From NCBI GenBank assembly GCA_977017575.1, contig CDRNVI010000049.1, positions 445,917-509,916 on the forward strand: 64,000 nt of DNA, in the 5' to 3' direction. This stretch comes from Paramoeba atlantica (Eukaryota; Protista; Discosea). The notes beneath the pieces are model-generated. The model was not told where the DNA came from. It saw nothing but the letters and a program-made list of their open reading frames with translations, and ran no database searches. Shown here in pieces: positions 1 through 59,030 of the stretch. Both the position numbers and the translations under genes were made by a program. Each line of letters begins with the position of its first letter. Position 1 is the stretch's first letter.

Positions 1-1
1 T

Positions 2-826
2 GACGTGAGAAGAAGAAGAAAGAAAAGGCAGAGGGAGGAGAGTACGGAGTGTGTCGCGACAGGAAGATAGAAGGGAGAAAAGACCCCCGGGACGTTGTGG
101 GGGTGTGGGGGTTGGAGTGGTGGGGATGAGGTTTGGTGGGGTGGTGGTGTCCACATGGGGCGTAGGCTCGCTGGTGGTTTCTGCAATTTCTCGGGTTTCG
201 GTTTCCGTGTGTGTATCTTCCTCGGTGACGGATTTTGTGATATTTTCCTTGCTACTTGACAAAGAAATTTCGGATAATTTCTCCTCCATTTTCCTTTCTT
301 CGGCTGTATTTTGGAACTCTCCGCCCGCTGCGACATTCGGTTGAGCGTCCGCCCCCACTTTCTCCTCCTTATCACTTTCTGTCGTCATGGCCTCATCTTT
401 TTTCTCCGCCGCACTCTTCTCAGCACCGCCGCACCTTTCCTGTACTCCATATTCCTCCTCACTCCTTGCCGGGGAGGGAGACGCAACCCTTTCCAATGTC
501 TTATTTTCCTTTGTGATATCTTCCTTTCCCGCTTTTTCTTCCCTTTCTTTCTCTTCCATCTCTTCACCCTCCTCGCCCTCACGGTAGCTCGTAAACGCAC
601 AAGTATGAGTTATGTTAAGCATTGCGGGACGACCCGGAGGCTTGTCTCGGGGCAGTTTCTTTTTTCGTCTAGAGGGGAGGTTTACAGGGCTTCGGTTCGC
701 CGGGGATCTCTCCTGTGATTCCGACAGTTCAAACCAAGAGGGCTCGGAAGGTTCACGGAGTAAGGGGGTGCGGACCTCGGCGTCGGTCCGGGAAGGGGTC
801 TCGGAGGGAGATAAGGTGTGGGTCAT
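2..826 (-). CDS. Hypothetical acidic/low-complexity protein, open at the window edge
   Basis: Manual translation from ATG at 826 (MTHTLSPSETPSRT...EEMEEKEREKAGKED...LCLFFLLLLTS) runs to the window start with no stop. It is absent from the ORF track because it has no stop codon. Same strand as the other host genes. Confidence 0.5.
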   Translation of the reverse strand, partial: MTHTLSPSETPSRTDAEVRTPLLREPSEPSWFELSESQERSPANRSPVNLPSRRKKKLPRDKPPGRPAMLNITHTCAFTSYREGEEGEEMEEKEREEKAGKEDITKENKTLERVASPSPARSEEEYGVQERCGGAEKSAAEKKDEAMTTESDKEEKVGADAQPNVAAGGEFQNTAEERKMEEKLSEISLSSSKENITKSVTEEDTHTETETREIAETTSEPTPHVDTTTPPNLIPTTPTPTPPQRPGGLFSLLSSCRDTLRTLLPLPFLSSSSHV

Positions 827-1183: not shown

Positions 1184-1500
1184 TTAGTCAAAGAGTCCCA
1201 GCCCCATGTCTTCGTCTTCCTCTTCCACGACTTCCTCTTTTTTCGCCTCGGCTGGGGCAGAGGTCCCAGAGGCAGCGGGAGCACTGCTGGGAGCAGCCGC
1301 ACCGGTCCCCAGCGTCTGCAACTTTGCACTCCCCTCCTCGATCAACTGCGCAATATCATTAGATCCTACCTCGTTAAACAAGTGCTCAATGCGGTCAGAA
1401 TCTGGCTCCACCCCTGCGGCACGTAAAATATCGGTTACGGTATCCTTAGTGGGTTTTTCTTCCCGAGAGAGGCAAGAGCGTATGCAGCTAGGTATTTCAT
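1184..1500 (-). CDS. RPLP2: 60S acidic ribosomal protein P2 (one apparent frameshift)
   Basis: ATG 1500 gives MKYLAAYALASLGK. The next frame gives KPTKDTVTDILRAAGVE...EEEDEDMGLGLFD, the P-protein C-terminus. One extra A in the A5 run near 1457-1461 joins the frames. Confidence 0.92.
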
Positions 1501-7729: not shown

Positions 7730-8343
7730 CAGGGGGGATAACCAATATCGGGACACCTCCCATTTTTGGGCCATGGGTCCGTTTCACCTGATTTCTGTTG
7801 CAAAAGAGAGATCTCGACGCGAATATGATCGGAACGACATTTTGCGCCTATTTAAACATACTTGTAAAAAATAGTATAAAAAAAATAAAAAACATCTTCA
7901 AAAAATATGCAAATTTATGTAAAAATTGTGCCAATCCCGTTAATATTGTCCACTAAAGGATACAATTCTCTTTTATTGCACCGGGTCATGGGCAAGCCCG
8001 TCGTGCGGGATTGCAAGCAGGCCCAAACATTATTGATTGGCCCTCACTATTGATTGGCCTTAAGTCACCTGACTTAAACTTGATAGAAAACTTGTGGTCA
8101 ATCATGGATGACTACATTCATAGTTCTTTGCGTCCGAAAAATACGCATGACTTGCGAGAGGCCATACCCAAGGCTATTGAATATCTCCTAACCGAAAAGC
8201 GGGATATCCTAGAGAAGACTCTGAAGAGCCTCCCAAAACGGTTAGAAGAGTTACGAAAGTGTAAAGGGGGTTATTTCATACTAAATAACTTTTTCAATGC
8301 TTTTTAATCCACATTTTAAGACATTTTATTCCACATTTTCAAA
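7730..8343 (+). mobile_element. Truncated Tc1/mariner derivative (same family as 45620-47008)
   Basis: TA followed by the CAGGGGGG left TIR, shared with 45620. Transposase C-terminal remnant KSPDLNLIENLWSIMD at 8011-8307. Right TIR missing. Confidence 0.8.
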
Positions 8344-8523
8344 TGTCCCCCCCCGTTTAAGCGCACCTCGTTTTCCGCGAAAAGTGCGCTTAAACGGGGA
8401 GGTCTGAATCACTCCGTAAAAAAACATTTGGCGCCGCTTCGCGGCGCCGGGATCTTTCCTTCAACTCTATGTGCGCTTAAACGGGGGGGTCTGATCGGGT
8501 GCGCTTAAGGAGAGGGGGGACAG
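8344..8523. mobile_element. MITE of the CTGY-CCCCCC family (second copy at 41418-41593)
   Basis: Near-identical ~177-bp body to 41418-41593, ending GGGGGGACAG + TA. Confidence 0.8.
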
Positions 8524-8575
8524 TAATAATAAAGTAATGTTATTTATGAATAATTACTCCCTATAAGATACCCGT

Positions 8576-9504: not shown

Positions 9505-10448
9505 AAGGGGGGGCTCGTCTATTGTTGGCAACTTTTTTGCCAAAAATAGCCGATTGCCAACAATAGATGATACAATACCCCCCTTAACCAACAATAGATG
9601 GAACGGCAATAAAATCATCTATTGTTGGCTATCAAGGCAACTTTTATCACTCATCTATCAACTACTTTTATCACTCATCTATCAACTACTTTTATCACTT
9701 ACACTACCGTCGCCCCCCCTCACATACACGAGTATACAATTACCTATCCTCGAAAAAGAGGAAATTTTCGAAAATTTACGAAAAAAGTGGAAATTTTGAC
9801 CTTCGCAGATTCCGTATGTATGACGGAGTTTATCCGTCATACATACAACCAACTGTATACAAGATACAGTTTCTGTACCTTGTTGGTACATTTTCCTTTA
9901 GTTCATCTTTTCTTTCCCCGGCAACGGGCATAGTCTTACTGTTTATATGCCCGTTGCCGGCTGGCACTAAGGCCGAAACTGTCCCTCTTTCTCGTCGAAG
10001 CAGGGGACGCGCTTCCACCCCATCACCCCTCCCCGGCTCACTCTTTGAGTGAGCTTACTTCCCTCCCCGGATTTCTTCCTTTCGCGCCCTTTCCTTCCCG
10101 GGGAGCCATGCACCATGTTTGCCTCCCTTGAGCACCACTGGGCGTGGCTCTGCCTCGTCTTATCGCGAGGCAGCGGTCGGTAGCAGTGCGCCCCTCCGGC
10201 TGCGTAAAGAGAGGGCGAGTTGCCTGGGCCCCCTCTACCGACAGAGTCCGTGCTAATCCCCTTGGTGCGACATCCGTCATTACAGATTGTGCCGATGATA
10301 TCGGCTGTCGTATCAAGGGCTGTATCTCTGCGCCAACGAGCGCATGAACATCGAACATGAGTCAAAAAAATCAAAATCAATTAAATCTCAACAATAACCG
10401 ATTACCAACAATGGGTGATTTTATAACAATAGATGTACCCCCCCCCTT
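9505..10448. mobile_element. MITE with AAGGGGGG termini and TA TSD, carrying an SL-headed repeat
   Basis: TA-AAGGGGGGGCTCGTCTATTGTT at left, AACAATAGATGTACCCCCCCCCTT-TA at right, with internal CCAACAATAGATG repeats. Confidence 0.75.
9861..10351 (+). repeat. SL-exon-headed GC-rich structured repeat, copy 1
   Basis: Begins AAGATACAGTTTCTGTACCTTGTTG|GTAC (kinetoplastid SL core plus donor). The body is near-identical to 16105-16680 on the opposite strand. Confidence 0.8.
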
Positions 10449-13068: not shown

Positions 13069-14781
13069 TCATAAAGTCAAGTTTAGAATGCGATTCGTCG
13101 CTGAACGTTCCAGGGTCTCCTTGTTCAATTTTTTCCGGTATAATACGCTATAATGCCCTGTTGACTCCTCAAATGGAAAAAAGGTATGAAACCAACGTCC
13201 AACCTCGACATATTTATTGTCGTGCAGAAAATCCATCATTTTCATGCTCAAATCATCATAAAGAAGTACAAAATCTGGAAACGTTGCGGTACGATTTTCT
13301 CTCAATCGGACCAATTGGAGCTGCTGTTGTATGTGTTCATCGTTTGAACTAATATTAGCGTAATTCCACAACAAGAACTCTCTTGGGTATTTCATAAATA
13401 TTGCGTGTGGGGTAGGAGGTTTCTCCTTCCCATTTTCCGAGAGATACAGCGGACACTGTATCGTATTCAACGTGTGGATCTTACCATGAAGATGGGAATA
13501 TCCCGGAGTTTGATGACATCCCATCCATATGTCAAGAGAAAGTCTCTCTTTGCCGTTTTGCGCCCCCCTCATGGTTTCAGGTAATCCTCGTAGGTATGTA
13601 AAGGCTGCAAGGTTTCCTCTCTGATGTAAATAACCCAGTGTAACAAAGAGTCCCAAGTTCAATATGACATAGAGGGGAAGAGCGCCTCGGTGAATACATT
13701 TCGGTATCCATGGTTTACCTTTTTCACCGCATTCCATAAGCGAGATGGAACAAAGACTAATAGCAATCGGAAGAATTGGGTACAGAAAGCGAACCTCCTT
13801 GTGAGGAAGCAAGGAATAGGCTAAGATCGTCCATAACACGGACAACGATAAAATCGCTTTCTTGGATTGCAACCGCTGTCCTTCTGATAAACCAACCACA
13901 ACACTTTGCAGTAAAATCGGATACAAGGGGCCCAGAAGTATAAACAGGCCGTGTGTGAGGTACCATGTAAAAGGGTGAGTGCCGAATATAGCCGATTGAC
14001 CTTGGAACACATTAAAAAGAAGAAATTGGAGGGGAGTGCACGTGAGCTCACCGTAAAACAGTGAGTCTAACACGGTGAGTACTGCGAGGCAAACAAGACC
14101 AATAACAAAGGTACGGATGGCACGAGCTTTGGAGGATAACGTACATAAGCAAATTACAGGGATCCAGTACAGGATACTCGTTACTCGGAGTGCAGTGGCA
14201 ATTCCTACGGTGACGATGAAATGAAGAAAAGCAGAGTCTTTCTGAATGTACATGGCACTTTTAATTGTATGCTGACGAACGTTGAAAGAAATTTTGGTAC
14301 AAAAAATTGCCGCCCAAGTGGTTAATAAGGCCTCTATGGAATTCACCAAAGTTCGGCAACCGTGAAATGGATGACTCCAAGTAAACAACAGTAACTTAAG
14401 AGCAAGAGTTTTTGCTACTTTAACTTTTTTCATTGAGTGAATGTGCTCTGCATCCCGGCATTCTACGCGTGCCAATTCAGATGTTAGTTTTATTACCGCA
14501 ACATCCAACAAAGCGCAAAATAAGCCTTGCAAAACGCGTGGCGAAAGAAACATTACCGTAGGTGTATCAATACCAAGCCCTCGAATCACATAAAATAACA
14601 GACTATAAATTTGGGCGTGCAAGCAGGATCGTAAGCCGGTCTTCCATTCCCAAGTAAGATCCCCTTTACCATATACTTCAAAGTAGGCAACTTCAATGGA
14701 TTGCCAGTACTCATCTGGTACGTAAGATGTTGCTATACTGCACGCAATGAAAACACGTAGTAATGCGAACAGAAGGAACAT
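13069..14781 (-). CDS. PIGB: GPI mannosyltransferase 3 (PIG-B/Gpi10)
   Basis: YVPDEYWQSIEVA, GDLTWEW...LRS, LPHKEVRFLYP and WMGCHQTPGYSHLH motifs, multiple TM segments, no introns. Confidence 0.95.
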   Translation of the reverse strand: MFLLFALLRVFIACSIATSYVPDEYWQSIEVAYFEVYGKGDLTWEWKTGLRSCLHAQIYSLLFYVIRGLGIDTPTVMFLSPRVLQGLFCALLDVAVIKLTSELARVECRDAEHIHSMKKVKVAKTLALKLLLFTWSHPFHGCRTLVNSIEALLTTWAAIFCTKISFNVRQHTIKSAMYIQKDSAFLHFIVTVGIATALRVTSILYWIPVICLCTLSSKARAIRTFVIGLVCLAVLTVLDSLFYGELTCTPLQFLLFNVFQGQSAIFGTHPFTWYLTHGLFILLGPLYPILLQSVVVGLSEGQRLQSKKAILSLSVLWTILAYSLLPHKEVRFLYPILPIAISLCSISLMECGEKGKPWIPKCIHRGALPLYVILNLGLFVTLGYLHQRGNLAAFTYLRGLPETMRGAQNGKERLSLDIWMGCHQTPGYSHLHGKIHTLNTIQCPLYLSENGKEKPPTPHAIFMKYPREFLLWNYANISSNDEHIQQQLQLVRLRENRTATFPDFVLLYDDLSMKMMDFLHDNKYVEVGRWFHTFFPFEESTGHYSVLYRKKLNKETLERSATNRILNLTL

Positions 14782-15246: not shown

Positions 15247-17130
15247 TCACACTACTATTTTATTATCAATCATTATTATATTGGTGCCTCCCACATAGGC
15301 TCTTAATGATTGAGGGTGAAGAGTCGTGTCGAATTCACCATACAAATCAGTATTACTATTTAAGTCAAGTCTACGCAGGTGTTTTGGAAGGAAATCAAAC
15401 AACACCAGACCACTAAATAGGTTTATCTGACATTCGAAGGCGTGGAGAGATGGGGGTAGGTGCTGTAAGTCAAGTGGTCCAGTGAAAAAGTTTTGCGCTA
15501 TATTTAGATTTTCCATTCTCCTCGGTAAGCGACTAAGGACAACCTCCCCAGAAAGCTCATTTGAATGAATATCTAAAAGTGTCAAAGTTGAAGGCAATTC
15601 GGAGAGATCCACGTTTTGAACGAATTTGTTACTGTTCAAAGGTTATGATCATACGCTCGTGGCGCAGAGATACGTCTCTCTGTGTGACGGCCGATACCAT
15701 CAGCGCATGACCCGCATACGACGGGTGTCACACAGAGAGTGGAGTGCGAGGTAGGAGACGAGTCGCCCATCGGTCATGCTACAGCACGTATAGCCATGGT
15801 TCATGCTGCAACACGGTCAAGCCGTGGGTTCATGCTGTCAGATGGTCTATCGTGGATCATGATGCATCATGGGGAGGTCCGTTACCGCCGCACTCGCTAC
15901 AGCATGTAGGGAGAGAGGGGTGCAAGTTCGCATCCCCTATACACGCATACAACGTGCCCTCCCGCTGTAGCACGCCCAGTGGTCCTCAAGGGAGGCCACC
16001 ATGGCGCATAGCTCCCGGGAGAAGAAAGCACGAGAAGTAGAGAGCCGGGGAGGGAAGAAAGCTCACTCGAAGAGAGCGAGCCGGGGAGGGGTGAAGAGTT
16101 TTGATGTTCATGCGCTCGTTGGCGCAGAGATACAGCCCTTGATGCGACAGCCGATATCATCGGCACAATCCGTATTGACGGATGTCGCACCAAGGGGGTT
16201 TAGCTCGGACTCTGTCGGTAGAGGGGGTCCAGGCAACTCGCCCTCTCTTTACGCAGCCGGAGGGGCGCACTGCAACCGACTCGGTCCCAGTCGGTAGAGG
16301 TGGTCCAGGCAACTCACCACCTCTTTGCGCAGCCGGAGGGGCGCACTGCAACCGACCGCTGCCTCGCGATAATGCGAGGCAGAGCCACGCCCAGTGGTCC
16401 TCAAGGGAGGCCACCATGGCGCATGGCTCCCCGGGAAGAAAAGGGCGCGAAGGGAAGAAAGCCGGGGAGGGAAGAAAACCCACTCAAGGAGTGAGCCGGG
16501 GAGGGGTGATGGGGTGGAAGCGCGTCCCCTACTTCGCCGAGAAAGAGGGACAGTTTCGGCCTTAGTGCCGGCCGGCAACGGGCATATAAAACAGTAAGAT
16601 TATGCCCGTTGCCGGGGAAAGAAAAGATGAACTAAAGGGAAAATGTACCAACAAGGTACAGAAACTGTATCTTTATTGCGAAGTGCCACCATTGCGTCAG
16701 GTAAATGCGATAAATTCATTTTTCCTGACAGTTCGTTGCTAGATATGTCAATTGCCTTCATCTCGGATGGCAATACATCGAGTGGTACACTTCCGGTAAG
16801 TTCGTTTCGCCATGCCCTAAATTCGCGTGTTGTGTCGCATAAATATTTCCATTGCAAGGATCCCCCAAGTTTCCTGTAACTCCAACGAATATACCTTACT
16901 TGTGAATTATAACAGCTCACGCCGGTCCAATCGCAAGCAGGTGTCGACGAAGTCCAGGATGGATCCCAATTTGAAATGTTCTCGACAAATCGTACAAGTT
17001 CATATTCCTGCGGTAAGTTCGCTCCCCGAACTTTACTCGGACGGTTCCCTACTGCATTGTGCTTATAGTCATCCGCTGCGTCGCAACACGAGGACAAAAG
17101 ACAGAGCGTCGAAAACATGACAGAAGACAT
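15247..17130 (-). pseudogene. Leucine-rich-repeat protein gene split by a ~1-kb insertion
   Basis: The 5' part (17130 to ~16681) has a signal-peptide-like start, a PACDWTGVSC cap and LRRs. The 3' part (15639-15247) continues the same LP.sL..l.i..N.lsG repeats. The insertion is 15645-16680. Confidence 0.85.
15645..16680 (-). repeat. SL-exon-headed GC-rich structured repeat, copy 2 (internally duplicated)
   Basis: Minus strand starts CGCAATAAAGATACAGTTTCTGTACCTTGTTG|GTAC (16680-16645). Two tandem sub-units (about 16105-16680 and 15645-16100) share terminal modules. Confidence 0.8.
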
Positions 17131-18141: not shown

Positions 18142-18982
18142 TACATCATATTACGGTATTCCTCCTTGTGTTTTAACTGTTTTTCTTCACTTATATTTCA
18201 ATAAGCAGGGGTAGAGCGGTAGTTATATTGTATGCCTACAATGTATGTAATATGACTACTGTATGTAATAATACAACCTAAATAACTGAATAATACAACC
18301 ACCGCAACTTCCCTATTTCGCACCCTGGATTCAATTGGTAGTATTTTCCTACATGACTAATTAGTGTAGTAAAAATTTTTTGGTCGTTTCGTTAAACGAC
18401 TTCTTTTCAAGCAGTCGCCGGTGCTGTGCAAGTGTAACAGTTTTCGTGCCCCCCCCCCAACTCCTTGTACATTTTTCATACAGGCTTGTGCTGCGACTTA
18501 TGCAAGTTCGTCAAAGAACAAATGAAAGTAGACTTTTTATTGCAATTTTACTTACCGTCACCCCCCCTCACCTGTCCTCCTAGGTGACATATCCTCTTTG
18601 TACAATCGATGAGAGGATATGTCACCTAGTACCAAGATACGAAAGCGAGGACAAGTCAGGGGCAATGACGATACAAAGATCACTATTTATTTAAGATTGA
18701 TTATTTACATTCATTTCATTACTCAAATTAAGTTAAACGGGGATCCAGTTTAGCATACTTGTGACCTCGTATCATACCGGGGGGGGTATGGTATCACACT
18801 CGAAGTCCGTACTATGTGACTTGTCCTCCTAGGCATAGCTACAATAATAATTTTTGTAATAATAATTATTAATAATTATTATTATTCAAAAAATCAAATT
18901 ATTAATATTATTAATAATTCAATATGCATTCACACGAGGGGCTGCGAGTGACACATGAGGAGCCCCTCGCATGTAGACATAT

Positions 18983-19038
18983 GGTCGGCGTCATTTGCAG
19001 CAGTATGATGGCAGCACCAGGGAAGACCGCGAGGAGAT
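18983..19038 (-). ncRNA. 5'-truncated HDV-like ribozyme copy
   Basis: AUC-UCCUCGC-GGU-CUUCCCU-GG...GACG-CCGACC matches the 3' two-thirds of the 19469-19541 copy. The P1 and P2 5' strands are absent. Confidence 0.55.
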
Positions 19039-19332
19039 CCAGAAAGCTCATTCTCGTTGCGACACATCATACAAATACAGAGTTTGGCATTTCCCGGCCC
19101 TCGATATCAGCACTCCACAAGGAGTTGTTGTTGGTACAGCACATTTACCTGCGTCAGGCGTAGGCTCCTACTTCCCGCGTAGGTTGAGGTGCATATAATG
19201 ATGCTCGAAGCATCAGCATCGACTCCATAAGGAGATCCCCATCAATGGTCCTTTTCGGCATGAAAATATTGTTTGACACAAAATTAAGGGCGAGAAATCT
19301 GAGTGTAAAAGCCCAATAATAATTTATTAATA

Positions 19333-19891
19333 CTGTGCCCCCCCCACTTATTTGTCACCCCTTTTTCGAAAAAAGGACAAATAAGTAGGGGGGATGGAGC
19401 TATCACAATTAAGTGGGGGGGTCACAGTTCTTGCATACTTCAAAAATATCTGCTTACGAATGTTCTTAGGTCAGCGTTAGTACCATCAGTAAGATAGCAG
19501 TGCCAGGGAAGACCACGAGGAGGTCCCGACCTTACTTCCCCATTTTGGGTTGCGCCCAGAAGCAAGCCCACTTTAATTTTGCAATAGTCAAAACTTTGCG
19601 ATAGAGAAAAAAGGTTATGGTAGTAGTATCATACATGAAGCGAGTACGGTACTCGTGTACTCACCCGAGTAAGCACAGCGAGTAATTACTCGGAGTACCG
19701 TACTCGCTGTACTCGCTTCCAGCAGGTATGCACTCGCTATACAAGTGAGTTTGGAACAAGTGACGTTATGTTAAGAAATTTCTGGTCGAGAAATTGCTGG
19801 TCGAGGAGGATGTGGGATGTGATAAGGGATGGAATGCGGCGCCGAATCCACTAGGCTTCGTCGAAAAGGACAAATAAGTGGGGGGGCACAG
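19333..19891. mobile_element. MITE (CTGTGCCCCCCCACTTATTTGTC TIR, TA TSD) containing an HDV-like ribozyme
   Basis: About 23-bp TIRs at 19333 and 19891, with TA on both sides. Confidence 0.85.
19469..19541 (-). ncRNA. HDV-like self-cleaving ribozyme fold
   Basis: P1 GGGGAAG/CUUCCCU with G1-U wobble, P2 GGUCGG/CUGACC, P3 ACC/GGU, L3 UCCUCGU, GG for P1.1, P4 UGCUAUC/GAUGGUA, J4/2 CUAA. Confidence 0.8.
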
Positions 19892-20025
19892 TAATTTATT
19901 AATAATTTATTAATAATCTATTAATAATAATTATTATTACCGAACTGAATTATTAATAATCCTGCAGCTATGCTCCTAGGTGACGTATCCGCTTTGGGCC
20001 GCTTTTTTCCACTTTTGCGAGGATA

Positions 20026-21471
20026 CAGGGGGGTAAATCAGATGCTGCGGGGGGTCTAAAAATTGCAAAACCCTTCAAATTTTGGAAAATGATAGCGCAT
20101 TCGAGAGCTCTCGCAGAGTTCTATGTTTTTGCGCTATTTTCACCCCAAAAGAAAGCAATTTTGTTTATGGCATTTTTTAAAAAGTTTTTTTGTCCCTCTA
20201 AAATTTGCAGTTTTTCCCAAATTTTCTCATTTTTTTCGTTTTTTCTCCATTTCGTCTCAGTTTTATGCCGCGAAAGCGATCCCGTTCTATGCAGAACAAA
20301 AGATTTCTCTCCGATAGGGCGTACTCCTCCCCTGGGCACACCAAATATTCACATAGGATGCTTCTTGTAAAAGATTACGAGAATACAAATTCCTATGGTG
20401 CCACTTGCCGAAGAGAAGGCGTCCACCACAGCACTGTCAAGTTGTGGGTGAAACGCTTTGAGGAAACCGGGGACGTTGAACGTTCCACACCCCCTCGCGA
20501 ACGCACTGTGGCGACACCCGGGCTTCTTGATGCGTGCCACGAGATTATTGACACGGCCAACACGTCAAGCACACGCGGTTGTCCCTCCTGGAATTTTATA
20601 CTTCGAGAGGTCAGGAAACGAGGTTTCACCTGCAGCAGGCCAACTGTAGTAAATTTTTTGAAGGACGCAGGGATAATCCAACGTTCTTTTTCGAAAGGCC
20701 TTTTTTTAACTGAATCTCATAAGGCCAAGCGACTAACCTTTGCATTGAAAATGCAGAAGTGGTCTGTCGCACAGCTTCGTCACATTATTTGGTGTGACGA
20801 AAAAAATTCACTTGCCAGCTTGGACAGGAAAGCCGCTCGTACATTTGCAGAGCAAGTGACCCCCCGAAACCACCTCTAAAAGCTTCGCAAAAGTGGTTTG
20901 GGGGGGATGGAGTAAACGTTTGGATGGGTTTCTTAAAGTTTCTTAAAGCGTCATAGCGGGGCCCGGGTTGCTATGGATAATGCTCCTTGCCACAATGGCA
21001 GTTTTAGAACCTTTAAAGAAAACGAAGTCGTTGTTTTGGACTTTCCCCCAAAATCCCCAGATCTTAACCCCATTGAAAACATTTGGGAAATTATGGATGC
21101 CTTTATTAAAAATGGTACAAACCCAGAAAATAGGACTGAACTCTTGTTTTCTATTGAAAGAGCGGTTGATTACATTAAAACAGATGGTCATGACATGCTC
21201 ATTAACACTTTAAAAAGCATGCCGCGGCGTTTCGACATAGTAGTAGAAAAAAAAGGAGAAAGTTGTAATTATTAGTCGTCTAAAACCTTTCTCATTTTTG
21301 CATTTTGACGTTTTTGGGCTTCTTGTCAGTTGAACACCCCCCTATACCCCGGGAAACTGCCTTTTCTAAAACATAGAACTCTTCGAGAGCTCTCGAATAC
21401 GCTATCATTTTCCAAAATTGGAAAGGTTTTGCAATTTTTAGACCCCCCGCAGCATCTGATTTACCCCCCTG
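20026..21471 (+). mobile_element. Tc1-like transposon (DD32E), internally deleted
   Basis: ~100-bp TIRs starting CAGGGG, TA TSD. Transposase runs from ATG 20265 to 21275 with WCDEK and DNAPCH...SPDLNPIE. About 100 bp is missing relative to the 48943-50490 relative. Confidence 0.92.
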
Positions 21472-21790
21472 TATGTGAGGGGGGGTGACAGTAGTCAATT
21501 CTAATCCATCGATCAATAGGGTTTAACCCGCTTACGACGTGCAAGAAAAACGGTAATCAAGAATCGTCTAAACAGCAAATTTCGGTAATCAAAGTGTTCC
21601 AAAAGGGCATACAAAGGACATATAAAAAGGCAAGATCTTTTACGTGATAACTCAGTTCATACTTTTGCTCTATGCACAGGATATGCTATGAATGGGGAGA
21701 GACCTGTAGATAGTACTTTTCCACTAAAACTTGCGCTTTGGATTCCCCGTTTTCATCATTTACAGCTGAAATATTACGAAAAGATTCTCT

Positions 21791-22726: not shown

Positions 22727-23626
22727 TCAAACAGGATACAGGAGCCCGTGATGTTTTCTCTCATGGTACCTACGCATACGCTCACGAACAATTGAATGAT
22801 AATCCTCACTCGTTGGAAGAAGCGCTCTACGTAGTTCCGTTTGCAATTCTTCAATTTCCCTCTCCTTCATTCTTTGCTTATTGAATTGCGCTCTCACATT
22901 CAGCACGTCACTTACTTTTTCCTGCGCTTTCTGTCGTTGAGATTCCGCTTCTTTTTCCTTTTTCTCCAAATGATACACAAAATCATCATACGAATGGAGT
23001 AACAAATCCAACAACGCGGTTTGTTTCCAAATCGAATAGAGAGTAACGACAACGCCACATTGGACAAGCGCCAAAGCTATTTTATAGCTCTGCTCGCTGA
23101 GTTCCCATTTTTTATGGTTCACAATCAGCTGCCGTACTTTTTGTATGTTTTCAACAAAGGTACGGCCGGTGCCATACATGGCCGCATCCTGGTGAATGTC
23201 GAGATCACATAACAAGGGGTGATCGTGGGGGTAAAACCCAGTTGATTTATCACAGCGCTCGGAGGCAAAAGGATTGGTTCTCACCGAGTGGGTTTCAGGC
23301 CGAGCTCGCATTTCGGCCAATGCTTCGTAGTGTGCCGCTCGGAGTAAGGAATCTGATGTGGAAGGGGTAGTGAGGGAATTCGATTTTTCGTTGTTTCCGC
23401 TATTTGCTCGAGATGTGTCCAAAGGAATTCTATTCGACATTCGTCCTATTTCCTCCCCGAAGAGCGGTCGGGGTCGACCACGAATTGTGATCTCAGCGGT
23501 GGAAATGTCCTCGCTTGTGTTTTTCATTTGTTGTAAGTGAACCCATTTCGCGTCTCGCGTGGTTGTGGTTACAGAGCTCTTCCATCCAGGGACTCGTGGG
23601 CGAAGACGACACCCACAGGGTTTCAT
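22727..23626 (-). CDS. Hypothetical protein with one TM segment followed by a coiled coil
   Basis: 299-aa ATG ORF with IALALVQCGVVVTLYSIW followed by a long E/K/R/Q-rich helix. Confidence 0.65.
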   Translation of the reverse strand: MKPCGCRLRPRVPGWKSSVTTTTRDAKWVHLQQMKNTSEDISTAEITIRGRPRPLFGEEIGRMSNRIPLDTSRANSGNNEKSNSLTTPSTSDSLLRAAHYEALAEMRARPETHSVRTNPFASERCDKSTGFYPHDHPLLCDLDIHQDAAMYGTGRTFVENIQKVRQLIVNHKKWELSEQSYKIALALVQCGVVVTLYSIWKQTALLDLLLHSYDDFVYHLEKKEKEAESQRQKAQEKVSDVLNVRAQFNKQRMKEREIEELQTELRRALLPTSEDYHSIVRERMRRYHERKHHGLLYPV

Positions 23627-25108
23627 TGAATGGCTTTTCTATTTGTGTACTTCTGTTCTATGATATAGAATTTTTCTTCTATACTGAATAGGTGTCACGG
23701 TACCGTGGACGAAAAAAATGACATTTTTTCAAAGAAAACTACTAAAGAGGTCACAACTTCAGAATTCCATTACGCTCCAAAGCGGAAATAGTGAGAATTG
23801 AGTCGATGGTGAAACTGAAGCAAGTTTTTTCTACCAACTTCTTTAATGGTAGCAAATTCTACGGGCCCACAACAAAATTTCAAAACACGGGAAAGGTGAA
23901 AACCATAGAAATAGAACTACAAAGTGCCAAAAAAAGAGTCCTAGTATACCGATCTCAACCCCTTAAAATCTCGACCACATTACGAACACCGATCTCGATC
24001 ACCGTAAAATCAGTTACTGTCGAGGTCAGTAAGGAAGGCTTGAAAACCATACTTTTCTCGTTCAGAAATATCGTACAAGTGACCCTTCTATCAAACAAGC
24101 ATCTTGCCCATATATTGCCTCGCCTTGTTACGAAACTATTGAACAGGTAAAACGTGCTGAATACTCATGCCGATGCATGCAGGTACATGAAACGGAAAAG
24201 CGAGAAGCAGAAGAATAATGAAAAAACACATCATGATTGAAATTACAACCTCTTCCATTCAATCGAATATTTCCATACATGAATCCCCGAAAAGTTACTT
24301 TGCCTACGACTCCATCGAGAACGAGTTCCGCGAAGAGGCGTTGAACTACCACCAGTTCGGATACTGCAACCGATGGCTCCACCCACACGATGGATCCTTC
24401 GGAGAACACACCGCCAGGAAGTTATGTCCTTGTCGCGGTGCGACGAGAGGGTACTTCCTCAATGGGGCACGCAATAGTGTCTTACCATCGCAACAGGCAC
24501 GCACTCTACGGCAGCAACCCTGGGGACAGGCCATACAAGACCTAATATAGCGCCTAAATTCTTTCGTGATCGTTGCTTGGGTGCGGATACCCCCTTTAAT
24601 ACTGTAGGGCTATTTTGACAGGAATGGTCGTTTTTTGAGGGAGCGACTGGAAAGGTTTCAACCCTCTTAATGAGCAAATCAGGCCCTTACCGCAATTGGA
24701 AAGGGAAAAAAGGTCACACTTTACTAATAAATATTGCTGAACATTTAAAAACAATGTTCCTTAGCTTAGTCGAACACTAGTACTCTACTATACTGCCCTC
24801 CCTACTTCAAAGTCAGCCAATTTGGACTATTAAGTAGGGGGTTAATTTTTATCACCCCCTCATTTTTATAAAAACGAAATCAGACTAGGAAGGTGGGTTC
24901 TTTCCTTGGAGGAATGTAATGGAGCCTAGCAAGCGAAATCCTAAGACGGAGGACACGCCAATAATTGTACGAACTACATCTACTACCTGTATACAGAATA
25001 TCTACATGTACCTGTATACAGAATTATCATGGATATGGCTGGATATAGCTGGATGGATATAGCATCAGGAAGAGTTTAGTATGGAATTCCCTAGTACGAG
25101 AGAGTTTC

Positions 25109-25744
25109 TTAATTCATCAACACGCTATTGCTCCCGGAACTAAGATTCCGCATTTTTTTAAGTGTTGTGTCAATCCAGTGCATCAGCCGATTCATGGGAA
25201 ACACCACAAGCTCGAGATTTCCCTGCAGCATTTCCGACGTAACGTCTGTTGCTTTTCTTGCAAAAGATCCAACAAACGTGACAAAATCATTTATTAGCTT
25301 TTCCGCCTGTTGGACTGTTGCAGCGTATAGCGAACCAACTTCCTCTGTATGCGTGCCCTCCAAATTTAATGCCACACTCTCTAATTCGAGACACAACCCT
25401 AATGTCACATTTGACCTACTTGCCCCTTCTCCGACGTGACTACGTGGCATACGCAATACCTTTGATGGACAATTGTCAGATACAAAACCAACATAAGCAA
25501 AATCGATCGTTTTTGAGCCCGACCCTGGAAAAGAGTTCGCCAAGGAGAAATTTTCTGACATACAACTGTGCACATAAATCGTAAACACGTAGCCCTGCGG
25601 CAGGCAAGGCTCCCTTGTAAGGCAGCAGACAAGTTCACGTGCTCTTACGGATGGAAGACTATAGGTCCAACGATTCTCTCCCGATGGAGTACCAGAAGTG
25701 CAAGGAATGTGTCCGGGAACTATCACCTGGAAAGGAGGCTGCAT
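25109..25744 (-). CDS. Hikeshi/OPI10 (DUF775)-like protein
   Basis: FQVIVPG start, ELVCCLT...LPQGYVFTIYV, VGFVSDNCPSKV, LGLCLE, FVGSFA and VVFPMNRLMHW follow the DUF775 pattern. ATG at 25744. Confidence 0.7.
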   Translation of the reverse strand: MQPPFQVIVPGHIPCTSGTPSGENRWTYSLPSVRARELVCCLTREPCLPQGYVFTIYVHSCMSENFSLANSFPGSGSKTIDFAYVGFVSDNCPSKVLRMPRSHVGEGASRSNVTLGLCLELESVALNLEGTHTEEVGSLYAATVQQAEKLINDFVTFVGSFARKATDVTSEMLQGNLELVVFPMNRLMHWIDTTLKKMRNLSSGSNSVLMN

Positions 25745-26532
25745 TTGTTGTATAAATATACTCCCATTCCACACAAAATCTATCGCATCATACTAGATCA
25801 AATGGTGGTGCTTTACAAACGGCTTGTAACTCAAAATTACATACATGTACTTTTGTTGGGTGTTTCTACTTACGTAAACGCTTAGGGGTGCGTCAATATG
25901 TATCATGGTAACGGATCTACCCGTCCACTTGCAATATTATGGACTGATCAGTCACATACTTAAAAATCAGGTTGTTTGACAAAATCGACCATTAAGAAAA
26001 CGAAGACGTTCATTCCTCGAAAATATGAAAATCCGTGCCGGTGAAATGCATGACTTGCTTCGCAGGGCGGATGTTTGGTTCGCCAAAAAATATTAGGTTC
26101 CTTTAATGAGACTACCTCACAAGAATACATCCAATAGCTATAGTTCAAGAAAATTGCGTGAAACATAACACAGCCTGTCTACGATCTAATGCTCGAATCT
26201 CGGTTGATATTGGTATCGGTGCGGGTCGTACAAAAATGAGTTGCAGTTGAACTTCATGCGGAGCCAGTAGTTTTCTGCAAAATATAGGGTGAGTGCAAAC
26301 AGTCCTAGGCACCATGCAGGATCTTTCGCACATTGACTGAATGTCCGTGGAACGAAACCGCCAAGCATAAACGTTAACTCTTCAAATGCGTAGGATGAAT
26401 GAAAGAAATGCCAAAATAGGGTAAAAAGTGATCATTCGGTGAAATAATATGCGACCTACAATGTCATAACGTTAGGATTTCCATTTACAATCGAACGTTT
26501 CACACCTTCCCACTCAAACGTTCCCCACAACC

Positions 26533-27249
26533 CTACACGATCAACTCCCCTCTCACCTCCATCCCCCACACCTCCCTCACCGACGTCTCAAACTCCGGAT
26601 CATCACAAATCCCCGGTCGGAACGGTACTCTCCCCCCACCCCTTCCCCTCCCCCCTTTCTCCCCCCCCTCCCCCTCCCCTTTTCTCCTAAAATACACCAC
26701 CTCCACCACCCTCACCCCCACCACCTCCCCCACCACGACCCTACGACCCCCTTCCCCCCACCCCCCTTCCCTCCCCCCTCCGTCACTCGTGTCTCCCCCT
26801 CCCCCCTCCCCCCACCACCACCCTCGCGGCAGCCCCCCCCTCTTCACCACCATCCGCACCGGGGCCGTCTTCCCCCCCCCTCCCCCCGCCCACCCCCCGG
26901 GCACCAGCCTCAGCCCCCCCCCGGGGGACTGCCCCGCGACCACCCCCGAGAGCGCGGCCCCGGGGGCGGGGGCGAAGGCCGCGAGGAGGAACCGCACCGC
27001 CGTCCACGCCCCCCCGCCGGTGGGGGTCACGTGCGGGGGGCCGGCCCCGGTGACACGGGGCACCGCGAGCACGAGACCGAGGGAAGGAACGACGGTGCCG
27101 CAGTAGCGCCGGGTGAGGGCGTCCAGCAGGGCCGCGGTGGGGAGGGGGGAGGGGGCGTCAGGGGGGGAGGGGGCGTCAGGGGGGGAGGGGGGGGTGAAAT
27201 GGGGGGGGAGGGTACAGACGACGTCGCGCATGGGGTGGAGGAGGAACAT
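26533..27249 (-). CDS. POLR3H: RNA polymerase III subunit RPC25/RPC8 (RPB7 family)
   Basis: MFLLHPMRDVVCTLPPHF, RRYCGTVVPSLGLVLAV and GGAWTAVRFLLAAFAP..G..LSGVV align with the RPC25 N-terminal and S1 motifs. Confidence 0.75.
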   Translation of the reverse strand: MFLLHPMRDVVCTLPPHFTPPSPPDAPSPPDAPSPLPTAALLDALTRRYCGTVVPSLGLVLAVPRVTGAGPPHVTPTGGGAWTAVRFLLAAFAPAPGAALSGVVAGQSPGGGLRLVPGGWAGGGGGKTAPVRMVVKRGGLPRGWWWGEGGGGDTSDGGGREGGWGEGGRRVVVGEVVGVRVVEVVYFRRKGEGEGGEKGGRGRGGGRVPFRPGICDDPEFETSVREVWGMEVRGELIV

Positions 27250-32974: not shown

Positions 32975-34372
32975 CAGGGGGGATATTATACAGGGGGGAT
33001 TGTATATTAAATTATAAACCCCCGCTCACGAAAAGTGACCCCCCTCTTTTTTTTTCGTACAAATGTCCGTTTGAGCTGATTTTTGTTGCATTTTGCAGAT
33101 CTCAACACAAGGACTTTGCGCGTGAAAAAATGGGACAAAAAGAAACGAATACGCACAATTTAGAGAAGAATTACCATTTTGTCACTTTTTCGCCCTCCAA
33201 TCTTATACACTCCTTAAGTCGAGAATCAAAACTTAATACTGTTTTGTCGATCACTTTTTGCGTTAAAGAAGACCATGCTTTACGTACACATCGGATAAGT
33301 GAAGGTTTGTCCGATGGCGTTTGTTCGTCTACCGCTTCTTGGACCATAGACCAGACGTTTTCTATTGGGGAAAGGTCGGGCGAGTTGGGGGACCAGTTTC
33401 TTAAAACATCACTCATTCGATTCTCAATATACTCTTTGGAGGCACGGGCAGTATGTGCCGTTGCCCCATCCTGTTGAAATACACTATTAGGGGGGAAATC
33501 TACCTGTTTTAATGTTTCTATGTACGTCTCACTTGTAATAGATGTGTCATTTCGTAGAGTAACCAAATACCTCCAGCCCACTCCTACAGCACCCCAAACT
33601 TGGCATCTTGGTGCCCAACGTACTTTTTGACGCGGGGCTGCTTTTTGACCGCGCTTTACCCACATGTGTCTTCTGCTATCGTTGGTATCAAATATCTTTT
33701 CGTCCGTAAAAATAACACGGGCAGTATCCAATTTGTAATTCAAAGCAAATTGAACTATTCTTTGCTTTTGTCGTTCGGTAAGCCCTTGGCATACTGGCCG
33801 AGCGGCATAATTGTAATCCAGCGATGGTAGATCTCGCTTTACAGTGCTTTGCGAAACTTTTATACCTTTTTTACACATTTGGCCGTTTATACGCCTTGAA
33901 GAATTGAATTTTGGTACCCCAGCGGGGTCGAGAGGAGCCAATATCTTTTCAATTTTCTTTTTGCGAGATTCGATTTTTATTAATGGTCACAGGACTCAAA
34001 GTGTTCCCCACTACATTTTTTTTCGTTCAGATATTTTTTGGTTATCCTTCTAGAGACGTTAAAATCACGGGATAATTGTTTTATCGGAACACCTTCTCCC
34101 TGTCTCATCTTCAGAAGAACCTTGCCACTATCCGTAAGCTCCCCTTTTGGGAGCTGATATGGTGATTTGGTCATTTTTGGAAAAAAAAGTTGAAAAACCA
34201 ATTATTTTTTTTGACTAAATTTTAAAGTATTAAAATGAGCTGAAAACAGCGGGAACGTACAGATCTCGAAATTTTGAACGAAAAAGTGGTATGATAACCC
34301 ACCCACGCCCCCCTGTGCTAAAAATAAGGGGGAGTCACTTATTCGTGAGCGGGGGTTTATTTTAAATATACT
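32975..34372 (-). mobile_element. Tc1-like transposon (DD35E), frameshifted
   Basis: TA-CAGGGGGG left end and matching CCCCCGCTCACGAA.AAGTGAC subterminal IR. IFTDEK and QQDGATAH...NSPDLSPIE at 33171-33941, N-terminal HTH at 33980-34174. Confidence 0.88.
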
Positions 34373-37399: not shown

Positions 37400-40300
37400 G
37401 GCTATCCATGAGTTCCGCGACAGACTTGCTGTTGGCGTGAAGAAACATTTGCATTGAAACGTTTCCGGGTCATGGACGCTTGCCTAGAATTGTACTTGTG
37501 TGTCATCATTGAAAGCACAGAATCACAATATGTGACAACCGGCGGGACAAACAGATAATGTTGCGCAAGAGGGTAGACTTCCGGAAAATCGTAGCGCCCT
37601 ACTTTCTCCCACCATTCAATGTCCGTACAAGCTCCTCCAGGCCACTTTTAATTTTCGTGTGTCACATAAGTTTCCCATGCCGCCTCTGTGCAGTGAAACA
37701 TGGGCGCATTATTCTTTAGAAGATCGTTTGCTCGAGCACAAGTGATCGGCGCATAATTTTGCGTTCGTGTCGTCCATATGATGAATGTAGGGCTTAGCCA
37801 ACGAACGTCTTTCCAAAATGGAGTTGCGTGATTTTTGTTGAGACGACTCTCGTGGTGCTGGAGAGCAGCGGCGAGTGGAGGATTTGAAGGCCCTTCCTTA
37901 CGAAGCATACTAAGTGTGCTTTCAACACACGTCGCAATGGCGACGTTGTTCTCGTCAGAAAAGAGATTTGGGGAAGTACGCAGAGGTTCCAATCGCTTTA
38001 AAAAAGCCTTCCCCTCAGACATGATTGCGTCAACTGCGCCAGGAACTTTGAGAATGTCATAGCATGAGCATATGGACGCAGGAGGAATGGGTGTAGGTTT
38101 GCTAACTATGTGGGTTACAAATTTAGCAATTGTTGGCAATTCTGTTGATATATACTCAACCCACGTGAATTTATCCGCTATCCAGCGCGTGACACCACCA
38201 AGTTTAGGTGTCGTACGTACGCGTTCACGCTTAGCTTCCTCTTGCAATTTTTGTGCCATGGGGATAACTCTGGAAAGAGAAGTTAGGGCATTCCGCAAGG
38301 TCGCGAGTGCTTGTTCCTTTGAAGTCTCGTCCAATTGCTTTGATCCAAGTATTCCATACCACTGGAACAAGGTTTCTTCGGCGGACTGCGAAGTTTCGTC
38401 AAACTCAGTAAGTCGAACTTCAAGAGCAACACCAGCATACTCCGCTCGTCGAGTTCCTTGACCATGAAATGCTTGAGTGTAGTACTTTCGTAGCTGGACA
38501 AGAAGAATATCTTCATAATCCTTGGATGCGTCTTTCGCAACGTTGTTGAGAAGATGCCCAATGCACGGAATTAGGACAATGTGGGGATGTGAAGCCTGGA
38601 AATTTGTCACAAAGTCATTCCAATCTGCAGCTCCAAGAGGAACAATGCTCTCAAATACTTTTAGTAACACACCACTCGCTTCATAGCGAGACCAACATGG
38701 TTCACAGCTACATGGTTCACTGCGCATCCATCGACTATGAGATACGCCAGTTTGGATAGACGAGCTCCTTCCAGACAGTGTTGCAATTCACGTATAACAA
38801 TTTCGGCGGTATCCTTACCACTGAAAGCGCCATACTTCGGGTGATGCATCGGTGGCATGAGCCATTGATGATGTCCCACATAGAGAACCGCTACAAGAAC
38901 ATGTTCGCGGAGTACAGGGTCGATGTCTGCATCAATTGCTAGACCAAAAAATGCATACTCGTCAACAGTACGTCTTATTCGTCCCCAGAGTTGTTCCGCT
39001 AGGTATTGCACGTCTGCTTTGAGCACACGGGCGTCTTTCTGAAGAACTTGAATAGCTGTCTCAGTGGACATAACGGGTCGGTGCTGCTCATACAGGGGTG
39101 AAAACTTCCATCTGGGGGGGTCTAAAATTTGTAAAAACTTTTCAATTTTGTAAAATAATAGCGCATTCGAGAGCTCTCGCAGAGTTGTATGTCTTCGTAC
39201 TGGTAGCTTTTAACATATCAAAGTAGAACTACAAATGCCGAATAGGTCAAAAACTCGAATTGTCACTTGAAAAATGATACAAAAAAGTTGAAAAGTAACG
39301 TTTTCTCCCCCCAAAAAGATTGTTAGTAACCCCTGTTAGTATCCGCAATGTGCACCGTTCTTTTCTACAATGATTCTACAACGCTTTCTGAAGCTTTTTA
39401 GCGTATTCTCAAATTTGGATATTTGTTCCGTCTTAAGTTTATCATAGGAATCATGAATTGCGGAGAGTAATTGTTGTTGATTTTTGGGTTGAATTTGGTC
39501 CTTTGTCCCGTCCATTATTGACCAAAGATTTTCTATGGGGTTTAGATCAGGGGATCGTGCTGGCCATCGGAGCCAAGAATAACCCTTTTCTTGGGCCGCG
39601 GCACGAGCCTTATTATGTGCCGGGCAATTGTCCATCACTATTGTGGCCCGATGTCTCCTTAAATATTGGAACAGACCCCCCCCTTTTTTTCATGGCTTCA
39701 TAAAAAATTTGTCCCTTTACAGTTACTTTGTTTCCTTGAGAATCATGGGTAGGAAAGACGTGTAAATGAAACCCATGCTTTAAGCTCACCCCATCCAAAC
39801 CATAATACCTTCTCCACCATGATAGGGTTCTAATTCCCCTGTTTGTTCTTTGGGGGGGGTCAGATTTTCGGCAAAGGTACGTGGGTCGGGTGGATCTTTT
39901 GCACGTAAATTTTTTTTCGTCGCAGAAAATAATATTTCCCAGCGCAGCGTCGCTCCACTGTAGCATTTCAGTGGCAAATTGCACTCTGCGCTCCTTATGA
40001 TTATTAGATAAGAAAGGGGTCTTTAAAGCTGTTCTGAGCACAATTTTTTCTTTTGAGTTTTTCAACATGTTCCTTAGGGATGTTAGTGAACATATGAAGC
40101 CACGTCGCTTTACCTCTCTCCAGAGCTCGCTCCAAGTGGAGATACCATAAGGAAGGTCACGATAAGCGTCATCAATAAGCTTTAAAGATACTTTCATAAG
40201 ATCAGAGGTGGTGACCCTAGGTTGGCGCGTAGGGGATGGACTGGCCACGTCGCCAGTGCAATTAAATCTTTCCACCCAGAGTTTCACAGTTCCCTCGTGG

Positions 40301-40842: not shown

Positions 40843-41417
40843 AGTGGACTGGACTTCATAAACTTTTTATGATTTTTTTGGCAAAAAGTATTTGACACAT
40901 TTTCAAAAAGTGACAGATAACTAGGGGGGGGGGGGGTAGTCGACGAAAAAAATTCGAAGCGCTAAAAAGTGACAAATAACTAGGGGGGTTACGTGTGACA
41001 GATAACTAGGGGGATTCCCTAGATAACCAGGGGGATATCCCCGAAATGTTTTGACCCCACTTCGGACAAGGGGCTTGGCTTTATTTTTCCCCGCAGCGCA
41101 TCGCTGATCAAGAAGAAATTCGTAGAAATAAGCGCATAATCACGTTTGTGGAGACGAAGGGACAGGAAGAATTTTCTCCTTAAAGCGCAGATCAGCCTTT
41201 TGTACCTTAGCCCTCCCTTCATTACTTTATAGGGGCTTAAGAAAATATTTATCGTTAACATCTCATTATTATCCTCTTTTACCTTACAGCAATCTATTTT
41301 ACCTTACCGCAATCTATCCTTACAGCGAAACTAATTGGTTCATCCTATCAGCTAAAGCGTTGTCCTCATTAATTTTTATAAATGTAAATATAAATATAAA
41401 TTTTCATTTTTGTCATA

Positions 41418-45840: not shown

Positions 45841-46473
45841 GGGTAATGCCCACTTATATTGCACCCACTTTTCTATTTTTTGGGTCAAACTGTGCCACAG
45901 AGTTGAAGGGGACAGCACAACCTAAAAAGCAACTGGATCACACGCCCGGTCACACAACATAGGAACACAAGTACACAATCCTGCGGAAGGGACAAACGTT
46001 GGTTCTGAGAACGCGCCCCTACTCGCTTCAGTGTGCGGGGGCGCTAAAATATAATTCTGTCTCAGGGCTACACCCACAGTTGGGCTTTGCTCACAGACGT
46101 AGGCTACGCTCAAAGTTGGGCCTTACCTCCAGACAGGTAAACTAGGAGTCTTCTCTATATTTCCCACAGCCCTGACATGGGGCAGCATGGTCCAACATGG
46201 GACCTCCTAGCGGTCTTCCCCGCCACTGCCATGTGGCACTGACGCCATGCTTTCTTTTTGTGGCATTTTATCTGCCCGCAGGCATTTTATCTGTGCATGG
46301 GCATTTGACGTGTAAAGTGGCGAACTTTAAGCATACTGCAACATTTTTTTGACGTAAAGTAGGCGGAAGGAGGAAATGAGATAAAGTGTGTGAAGTTACT
46401 CTGCGCAAGAAAACATTTCAATGCATTCATATCATTATTTTGAAAGTGGGTGCAATATAAGTGGTCTGTACCC
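45841..46473. mobile_element. Merlin-type MITE containing an HDV-like ribozyme
   Basis: TIR GGGTA....CCACTTATATTGCACCCACTTT. Perfect 8-bp TSD AAATTGTC (45833-40, 46474-81). The empty site corresponds to about 7945 in the sister Tc1 copy. Confidence 0.88.
46179..46249 (+). ncRNA. HDV-like ribozyme fold, variant copy
   Basis: P1 GGGGCAG/CUUCCCC (one mismatch), P2 CAUGG/CCAUG, P3 ACC/GGU, L3 UCCUAGC, P4 UGCCA/UGGCA, J4/2 CUGAC. Confidence 0.65.
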
Positions 46474-58924: not shown

Positions 58925-59030
58925 TATAAAAATATACATAGTATATATGCATAGTATACATAGTATACATTATTGTATACATTATTGTATACATAGTATA
59001 CAATACAATACTATAGTATACAATACATAG

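Follow-up and report, generated by a model that had tools for sequence, protein, structure and literature searches.

A hepatitis delta virus-like ribozyme family as a probable internal module of TA-targeting DNA transposons in a kinetoplastid-type protist

The window examined here is the whole stretch of 64,000 nucleotides (64 kb) taken from contig CDRNVI010000049.1 of the Paramoeba atlantica assembly GCA_977017575.1 (positions 445,917 to 509,916). Its minus strand carries a 73-nt segment that is predicted to fold as a self-cleaving ribozyme of the hepatitis delta virus (HDV) type. The segment lies inside a short non-coding element with terminal inverted repeats (TIRs) and flanking TA dinucleotides, a MITE (miniature inverted-repeat transposable element). 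Related copies occur across the 45.7-Mb genome in several families designated by letters, of which family A includes the window element. The features of this element and of the predicted fold are listed below by window position.

19333..19891, minus strand: non-coding TIR element (MITE, family A), 559 bp, with TA at 19331-19332 and 19892-19893
19333..19356, plus strand: ribozyme-proximal TIR, CTGTG-C8-ACTTATTTGTC; the fixed "right" end on the ribozyme strand, common to 9/9 family-A copies
19869..19891, plus strand: opposite TIR; this TIR and the adjacent TTTTCGACGAAGCCT motif are homologous to the left end of family B
19376..19428, plus strand: two extra inverted copies of the TIR motif (fold-back) by the ribozyme-proximal end
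19469..19541, minus strand: predicted HDV-like self-cleaving ribozyme, 73 nt, identified by covariance model R1 (100.4 bits), a structure descriptor and a base-by-base check
Between U19542 and G19541, minus strand: predicted cut position, placed from the fold
19541-19535 (GGGGAAG) and 19511-19505 (CUUCCCU), minus strand: P1, 7 bp, 7/7 paired, first pair G1.U37
UAA, minus strand: J1/2 of the 19469-19541 ribozyme
19531-19526 (GGUCGG) and 19474-19469 (CUGACC), minus strand: P2, 6 bp
19524-19522 (ACC) and 19514-19512 (GGU), minus strand: P3, 3 bp, enclosing L3
19521-19515, minus strand: L3, UCCUCGU
19520-19519 (C22C23) and 19504-19503 (G38G39), minus strand: P1.1, two pairs
19499-19481, minus strand: P4 hairpin, 7 bp, loop UUACU
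19480-19475, minus strand: J4/2, CUAACG, with the candidate catalytic cytosine C62 at 19480

An earlier account of this window made from its letters alone (the sequence-only reading) had assigned a nested double pseudoknot to the segment, and a base-by-base check found every element of that fold in place on the minus strand. P1 starts from the cleavage-site G, P3, L3 and P1.1 form the core, and P2, P4 and the J4/2 cytosine complete the features of HDV-type membership. A descriptor of the fold was written for this analysis, requiring a 7-bp P1 from G, a 3-bp P3, an L3 with CC, GG after P1, a P4 of at least 4 bp, the motif C-N-R-A and a P2 of at least 5 bp. Over both strands of the window it gave a single match, at 19469-19541, and dinucleotide-shuffled windows gave 0.06 matches each (6/100 shuffles had one match). 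Rfam models cover HDV and a few animal ribozymes, and HDV-like ribozymes are usually detected by structure descriptors. No family passed in an Rfam scan of the window at gathering thresholds. The HDV_ribozyme model (RF00094) scored 20.5 bits on the segment, below its gathering score of 50, and despite this low score it aligned the P1-P3-L3-P1.1 core base for base. At an E-value threshold, the scan returned only this sub-threshold HDV_ribozyme match together with noise microRNA matches on the TIR hairpin. Plain minimum free energy (MFE) folding of the 73-mer recovered P1 and P4 with an unremarkable z-score of -0.25, as expected for a pseudoknotted fold. By every sequence criterion testable, the segment is a canonical HDV-like ribozyme.

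The fold belongs to a large family in this genome. Its 21-nt core occurs 135 times at up to two mismatches and never in a reversed control. The scan for further copies suggested by the sequence-only reading was carried out with a covariance model built from 15 copies, and it returned at least 150 matches in the genome, down to E = 1e-4. The model matches the window itself at three places, the 19469-19541 ribozyme and the two below.

18983..19055, minus strand (matched as 19055-18983): decayed second ribozyme copy, P1 with 4/7 pairs, catalytic C changed to A
18553-18577: C/H-type TIR, about 430 nt downstream of the decayed copy
46179..46250, plus strand: divergent third family member, 42.7 bits, P2 re-registered (CAUGG/CCAUG)

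When the 25 proposed pairs are scored in 28 distinct copies, standard pairs make up 93.9% of the cells, a share that falls to 55% or less when the partners are slid. P1.1 is kept in 26-27 of these copies and the J4/2 cytosine in 22, and the losses of this cytosine fall in copies that are otherwise damaged or old. All 25 pairs and the J4/2 cytosine are intact in 15 of the 28; the rest carry lesions such as C-to-A/U changes or a broken P1. RNAalifold recovered P1 and P4 independently. Several pairs of P2, P3 and P4 vary as GC/GU or CG/UG with pairing preserved, and a two-sided compensatory change is seen at one P4 pair only (CG/UA/UG).

Variant arrangements of the ribozyme were also observed. 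At three loci (L020, L021 and L022) two ribozyme units stand in tandem, at 1467-1539 and 1355-1430 (minus strand), 36 nt apart; the second unit is degenerate, with a palindromic repeat of the GGGTAAGTG type behind it, and this block occurs three times on contig C54. Two other loci (L012:1416-1539, minus strand, and L023) carry a variant with a P4 insertion of about 50 nt and the P1 sequence AGGAAAG, directly downstream of a 482-bp MITE with Tc1-like TIRs (TA followed by CTCCCCTGGCCAAAAATAAAGG). A metagenome scan with the 21-nt core pattern gave five GC-rich chance matches and no ribozyme, and ARAGORN found no tRNA in loci L010 or L059.

The sequence-only reading had placed the ribozyme within the TIRs of a TA-flanked element without an adjoining reverse transcriptase (RT), and both observations hold. 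The TIRs and TA flanks are present at 19331-19356 and 19869-19893, TA included, and nothing RT-like lies within 5 kb of the window ribozyme. The two TIRs are 24-26 nt long and differ solely in the length of their C-run (C7/8). No open reading frame (ORF) of at least 90 aa lies inside 19333-19891. On the ribozyme strand, a perfect hairpin with 16-nt arms (AGCGAGTACGGTACTC ... GAGTACCGTACTCGCT) stands at 19639-19708, 100-170 nt upstream of the ribozyme, and it is conserved in every family-A copy that reaches that far.

The genomic vehicle was defined from 50 loci around the best ribozyme matches, which fall into families with unrelated flanks; the surroundings were read for about 45-50 of the at least 150 copies. 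In BLAST comparisons between families, homology is confined to about -3 to +74/79 relative to the cut, that is, to the ribozyme. Within families, homology reaches a sharp shared end 210-260 nt downstream, and its upstream limit varies, with family-specific homology extending from 84 to more than 460 nt upstream of the cut. In at least one case (L067) the variable upstream border is due to a nested insertion at TA. The shared right end reads ...GGGGCACAG followed by TA in 9/9 copies of family A, ...GGACTCTTAAGTAGGGGGGGACAG followed by TA in family B, and ...GGACAAGTGAGGGGGGGGGTGACGG followed by TA in families C and H. In all four families the ribozyme occupies the same place, 210-260 nt from one TIR end and pointing outward. 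Judged by coordinates, a same-strand ribozyme lies 170-310 nt upstream of 20 of the 44 B-type right ends, and 8-9 of the roughly 10 C/H TIR pairs enclose one. Taking A-like, B-type and C/H elements together, at least about 42 of the at least 150 copies were verified at a fixed position in TIR/TA elements. On this sequence evidence, at least four related TIR/TA families (A, B, C and H) carry the putative ribozyme as a conserved internal module.

Transposition at TA can be read from families C and H. Three independent family-C loci have perfect 27-nt TIRs with TA on both sides and differing flanks; copies sharing both ends at different loci are seen for family C and partly for family B. Family C is family H with a 476-bp MITE inserted just behind the ribozyme (L044:4522-4997, against L027, L028 and L034). 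This MITE has perfect 30-nt TIRs (AAGGGGGGGCTCGTTTATTGTTAAC...) and is inserted at TA. Family H shows the empty site cctaaTAagttcg, and comparison of the filled with the empty site reveals the duplicated TA, which is direct evidence of TA-duplicating transposition in this genome. Target-site duplications (TSDs) of 8-9 bp, as of the Merlin, hAT or Mutator type, were considered and rejected, as independent family-C copies share only TA; none was found in families C and H. The window element is flanked by a 9-bp AT-rich repeat, ATTTATTAA. One low-depth contig from a public run with the same species label (X1) joins 19310 to 19900 and skips 19311-19899. This junction may reflect a presence/absence polymorphism with an empty allele in an ambiguous AT-rich flank, and it is not a clean empty site because a 24-bp AT-rich repeat unit is missing too. 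Many further short elements with inverted ends of the form TA followed by CTG(T/G)...C7-15... lie in the window, at 8339-8527, 41413-41597, 61238-62067 and 60318-60430; TIR elements in this genome seem to be characterized by a homopolymer run of C or G close to their ends.

The ribozyme also evolves more slowly than the DNA that carries it. Between families the flanks cannot be aligned, and the ribozymes are 82-91% identical. Within families, identity of the ribozyme against that of the adjoining element is 98.6 vs 93.4%, 95.8 vs 91.1% and 97.0 vs 91.4%. Old or truncated copies have broken folds, with P1 or the catalytic C lost, as at 18983-19055 in the window, in families D and E and at locus L005. 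Together these observations make it probable that, in this kinetoplastid-type protist, non-autonomous TIR DNA transposons that target TA, MITE-like and of the Tc1/mariner style, carry a genuine HDV-like ribozyme family as a conserved module in their interior. The claim that the ribozyme was spread by DNA transposons is supported for the window copy and for at least four families by the TIR/TA ends, the fixed position and the lack of RT.

The strongest competitor, which we nevertheless regard as unlikely, is that the ribozyme is a passenger of retroposon origin. A Pr77-like head of an ingi/L1Tc/SIDER- or CRE-type retroposon would have landed in an ancestral TIR element and since been copied passively with DNA transposons, playing no part in them, and other copies might still head retroposons. 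In trypanosomatids, HDV-like ribozymes do stand at the 5' ends of L1Tc, NARTc, ingi and RIME (PMC3185411, PMC12278014). RT elements abound in the genome (1851 candidates), an A-rich stretch immediately follows the family-B ribozyme, and the homology between families covers exactly the length of the ribozyme. However, at none of the 50-odd loci is the ribozyme followed by an RT ORF or by a body ending in poly(A), and the sequence behind it in families A, C and H lacks poly(A), TSDs and any RT body. The sequence-only reading had its DNA-transposon link fall if most copies headed retroposon bodies, and in the sample read they do not. At 21 loci with 5 kb of downstream sequence, the ORFs behind the ribozyme are host genes, including V-ATPase AC39, a GT4 glycosyltransferase, ribosomal L27A and DUF229, with the exception of a Tc1-like transposase at locus L044. 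Among the best 150 RVT_1 matches, compared by hand, none lies within 5 kb downstream of any of the 150 ribozyme matches listed; the window contains one RT fragment, outside 5 kb of the ribozyme. The placement typical of Pr77/L1TcRz, at +1..77 of a non-LTR (non-long-terminal-repeat) retroposon, differs from that seen here, where homology continues upstream, a TIR lies downstream and no RT or poly(A) is present. In four families the ribozyme has the same place and points the same way with respect to the TIR end, which speaks for common descent of whole elements and not for repeated capture. A dead passenger, moreover, would not be expected to evolve more slowly than the rest of the MITE.

A less likely explanation still is that the 73 bp are kept for something other than catalysis by the RNA, for instance as a transposition site in the DNA (bound by a transposase or a host factor) or as an internal promoter like that described for Pr77, and that the HDV-like fold has no activity or arises incidentally. 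Pr77 also serves as a promoter (PMC3185411), the propagation of MITEs selects DNA and not RNA, and P1, P3 and L3 are nearly invariant, so that conservation of the primary sequence is possible. Such a role leaves unexplained why all requirements of the HDV fold are satisfied, P1.1 and the J4/2 cytosine included, and why changes in P4 (CG/UA/UG) and P2 (GC/GU) preserve pairing. The copy at 46179 even re-pairs P2 with a different 3' strand.

The host context of the element bears on a third explanation. The window ribozyme is flanked by host genes on the minus strand:

13069-14781, minus strand: Alg9-type mannosyltransferase, host gene
22727-27249, minus strand: host ORFs

The window ribozyme is therefore on the transcribed strand, as the sequence-only reading had it. 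This does not extend to other loci, where the sampled orientations are mixed (about 9 same, 6 opposite). It is highly improbable that single insertions are kept by the host as a domesticated processing signal, the ribozyme and the pyrimidine-rich TIR copies downstream of it serving as a movable cassette that processes intergenic RNA of polycistronic units. On the ribozyme strand, tracts of C-runs or pyrimidines with a following AG do lie about 120-190 nt downstream of the cut, and the window copy shares its strand with the flanking host genes, but old copies decay and orientation relative to neighbouring genes is mixed. Decay of the fold in old copies together with mixed orientation fits conservation at the level of lineages, with selection acting in propagating element lineages rather than on each insertion, and not host upkeep of single insertions. 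The window also contains three copies of a kinetoplastid-like spliced-leader 3' part with splice donor (CAGTTTCTGTACCTTGTTG followed by GT), at 9867-9887 (plus strand), 16647-16667 (minus strand) and 54925-54945 (minus strand), all outside any spliced-leader gene array.

If the ribozyme is a module of DNA transposons, its action can be outlined from the sequence. RNA polymerase would read through the element on the ribozyme strand, and the transcript would fold into the nested double pseudoknot. C62 (19480) in J4/2, with Mg2+, would then catalyse transesterification 5' of G19541. The upstream RNA would be left with a 2',3'-cyclic phosphate, and the other product, with a 5'-OH, would begin at the ribozyme and exit through the transposon end about 210 nt further on. 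Our best guess at the benefit is that cutting read-through or polycistronic RNA makes insertions tolerable, or else that it processes RNA of the element.

The sequence just upstream of the predicted cut may regulate this reaction.

19542..19575, minus strand: leader containing CUUGCUUCU, an anti-P1 stretch that could pair with the 5' strand of P1; candidate attenuator

An anti-P1 stretch is found 15-35 nt upstream of the cut in families A, C/H, E and F. It reads CUUGCUUCU in family A, ACUUCCUC in C/H (L044:5074-5110, minus strand), CUUUCUU in family E, where P1 is AGGAAAG, and GCUUCCC in family F, where P1 is GGGAAGC. The stretch changes together with P1 between families, also upstream of the L012 and L020 ribozymes, and in some families it is itself part of a small hairpin. 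The leader looks like an attenuator/anti-attenuator arrangement, and the anti-P1 stretch may weaken cleavage or tie it to folding during transcription. Among HDV-type ribozymes, L1TcRz included, upstream sequence is known to interfere with P1 (PMC3185411).

Transposases of the Tc1-like type are common in the genome. Their matches number at least 122, some of them without stops, and the window contains six Tc1/mariner-type transposase genes or remnants with HTH_Tnp_Tc3_2 and/or DDE_3 domains.

20024..21476, plus strand: adjacent Tc1-like transposon remnant, TIRs of about 40 nt at 20014-20058 and 21435-21476
20205-20879 and 20973-21275, plus strand: HTH_Tnp_Tc3_2 ORF and DDE_3 fragment, decayed, within this remnant
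20024-21476; 33171-33977; 39613-40494; 49586-50356; 57310-58053; 58982-60130: the six Tc1-type positions

The decayed adjacent transposase begins about 310 bp from the window MITE, on the strand opposite to the ribozyme, and the ORF at 58982-60130 (382 aa) has both domains. An autonomous Tc1-like master bearing the ribozyme was considered and rejected, as compact Tc1-like elements of 1.3-1.45 kb are found without a ribozyme. At locus L044 and its 99% copy L052, an intact Tc1-like transposase stands between two ribozymes, an arrangement that represents a nest. These loci were likewise rejected as a ribozyme-bearing master, the upstream ribozyme belonging to an inserted family-C MITE; the second ribozyme follows the stop of the transposase at a distance of about 500 nt.

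Several observations weigh against the assignment of the ribozyme to DNA transposons, or against its activity there. It is not obvious why a DNA transposon should need a ribozyme. The sequencing runs found were DNA-like, and in four such contig sets no end falls at the predicted cut position. For about 100 copies, among them two groups of recent amplification in which L3 reads UACUCGC and UUCUCGU, the data consist of coordinates and core sequence only. About half of the B-type ends lack a ribozyme, and families D, E, F and G show either no matching TIR within 1.5 kb or one end only. In family A the left TIR is absent from 7/8 other copies, and both TIRs are present in the window copy only (n=9). 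Copies without the left TIR (L061-L064, at about -330 to -510 from the cut) run into a minisatellite of about 45 bp (ttttttaccgtatgctttaatttctatttagtttctagttacactg), and most of family A therefore belongs to a larger composite repeat. The Tc1-like TIRs that were read (TA followed by TAAACCCCGCG... at L054 and by CAGGGGGGTAAATC... at window 20024-21476) differ from the MITE end, TA followed by CTGTG-C8-ACTTATTTGTC, except for the C/G run, and none of the Tc1-like elements read has a transposase with TIRs that match the MITEs beyond this run. Covariation is weak because the copies are closely related, and pair-count measures do not exceed shuffle controls. In a nested MFE model with a 60-nt leader, families A and C pair the anti-P1 stretch with the 5' strand of P1, so cleavage could be attenuated there; in family B the leader folds into a separate hairpin and P1 is formed.

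A broader reading, possible but doubtful, is that the ribozyme is a selected, integral part of a cut-and-paste superfamily and that, together with the pyrimidine-rich fold-back TIR copies, it makes up a portable RNA-processing cassette. Such a cassette might provide a cut and possibly a spliced-leader acceptor in an organism in which all mRNAs come from polycistronic precursors. If this tentative reading were true, class II elements would for the first time be linked with a ribozyme function, and they might have served as a source or a sink of the Pr77 ribozyme of trypanosomatid retroposons. In the open full-text literature, no report of an HDV-like or self-cleaving ribozyme in a class II element was found, subscription journals lying outside the search. 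To our knowledge, genomic HDV-like ribozymes have so far been tied to retrotransposons, in which they trim RNA that is copied back into DNA; a few host genes also carry them, in an unclear role. As far as we know, every intergenic insertion in kinetoplastid-type organisms is transcribed within a polycistron. A ribozyme conserved in DNA transposons poses the question of what benefit self-cleavage brings to a cut-and-paste element or to its host, a question made sharper by the polycistronic setting. The elements also add to the evidence of rich DNA-transposon populations in free-living relatives of trypanosomes. In the literature searched, DNA transposons in kinetoplastids are reported as a few Merlin relics only (PMC8101967), and trypanosomatids have been described as free of them (PMC12278014).

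The elements resemble Stowaway-type (Tc1/mariner-derived) MITEs, being short and non-coding, with TIRs, TA target duplication, nested insertions and Tc1-like transposases in the same genome. They differ in carrying a structured, putatively catalytic RNA module, a C7-9 run in the TIRs and extra fold-back copies, and in that no transposase with matching TIRs was seen among the Tc1-like elements read. Retrozymes (PMC4918200, PMC7229834) are likewise non-autonomous repeats with a small ribozyme as conserved module, but theirs is a hammerhead, and they are retroelements that propagate via circular RNA; each TIR element here has one HDV-like ribozyme. HDV-like ribozymes also head R2 and other non-LTR elements in animals (PMC3774820, PMC3414825), where the fold processes a read-through co-transcript of a promoterless mobile element, as is predicted here. 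In those elements the cut sets the 5' end of the RNA transposition intermediate, whereas a cut-and-paste MITE has no RNA intermediate.

L1TcRz/Pr77 (Sanchez-Luque et al. 2011, PMC3185411) is of the same ribozyme class, occurs likewise in a kinetoplastid-type host with polycistronic transcription and is also part of a mobile element. P1 is open to interference from upstream sequence in both, and the architecture agrees, with J4/2 starting CUAA, in a comparison of these features for which the 3' two thirds of L1Tc Pr77 were rebuilt from published primers. L1TcRz, however, occupies positions +1 to 77 of a TSD-flanked non-LTR retroposon with a poly(A) tail, whereas the window ribozyme is internal to a TIR/TA element, with family-specific upstream sequence, an element end about 210 nt downstream and no RT nearby. 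The HDV antigenomic ribozyme (RF00094) shares with the window ribozyme the nested double pseudoknot, the P3-L3 core ACCUCCUCG(U/C)GGU, P1.1 as CC/GG and J4/2 as CUAA. The window ribozyme differs from it in its short P4 (7 bp) and in P1 and P2 of unrelated sequence, and it is genomic and repeated, not viral.

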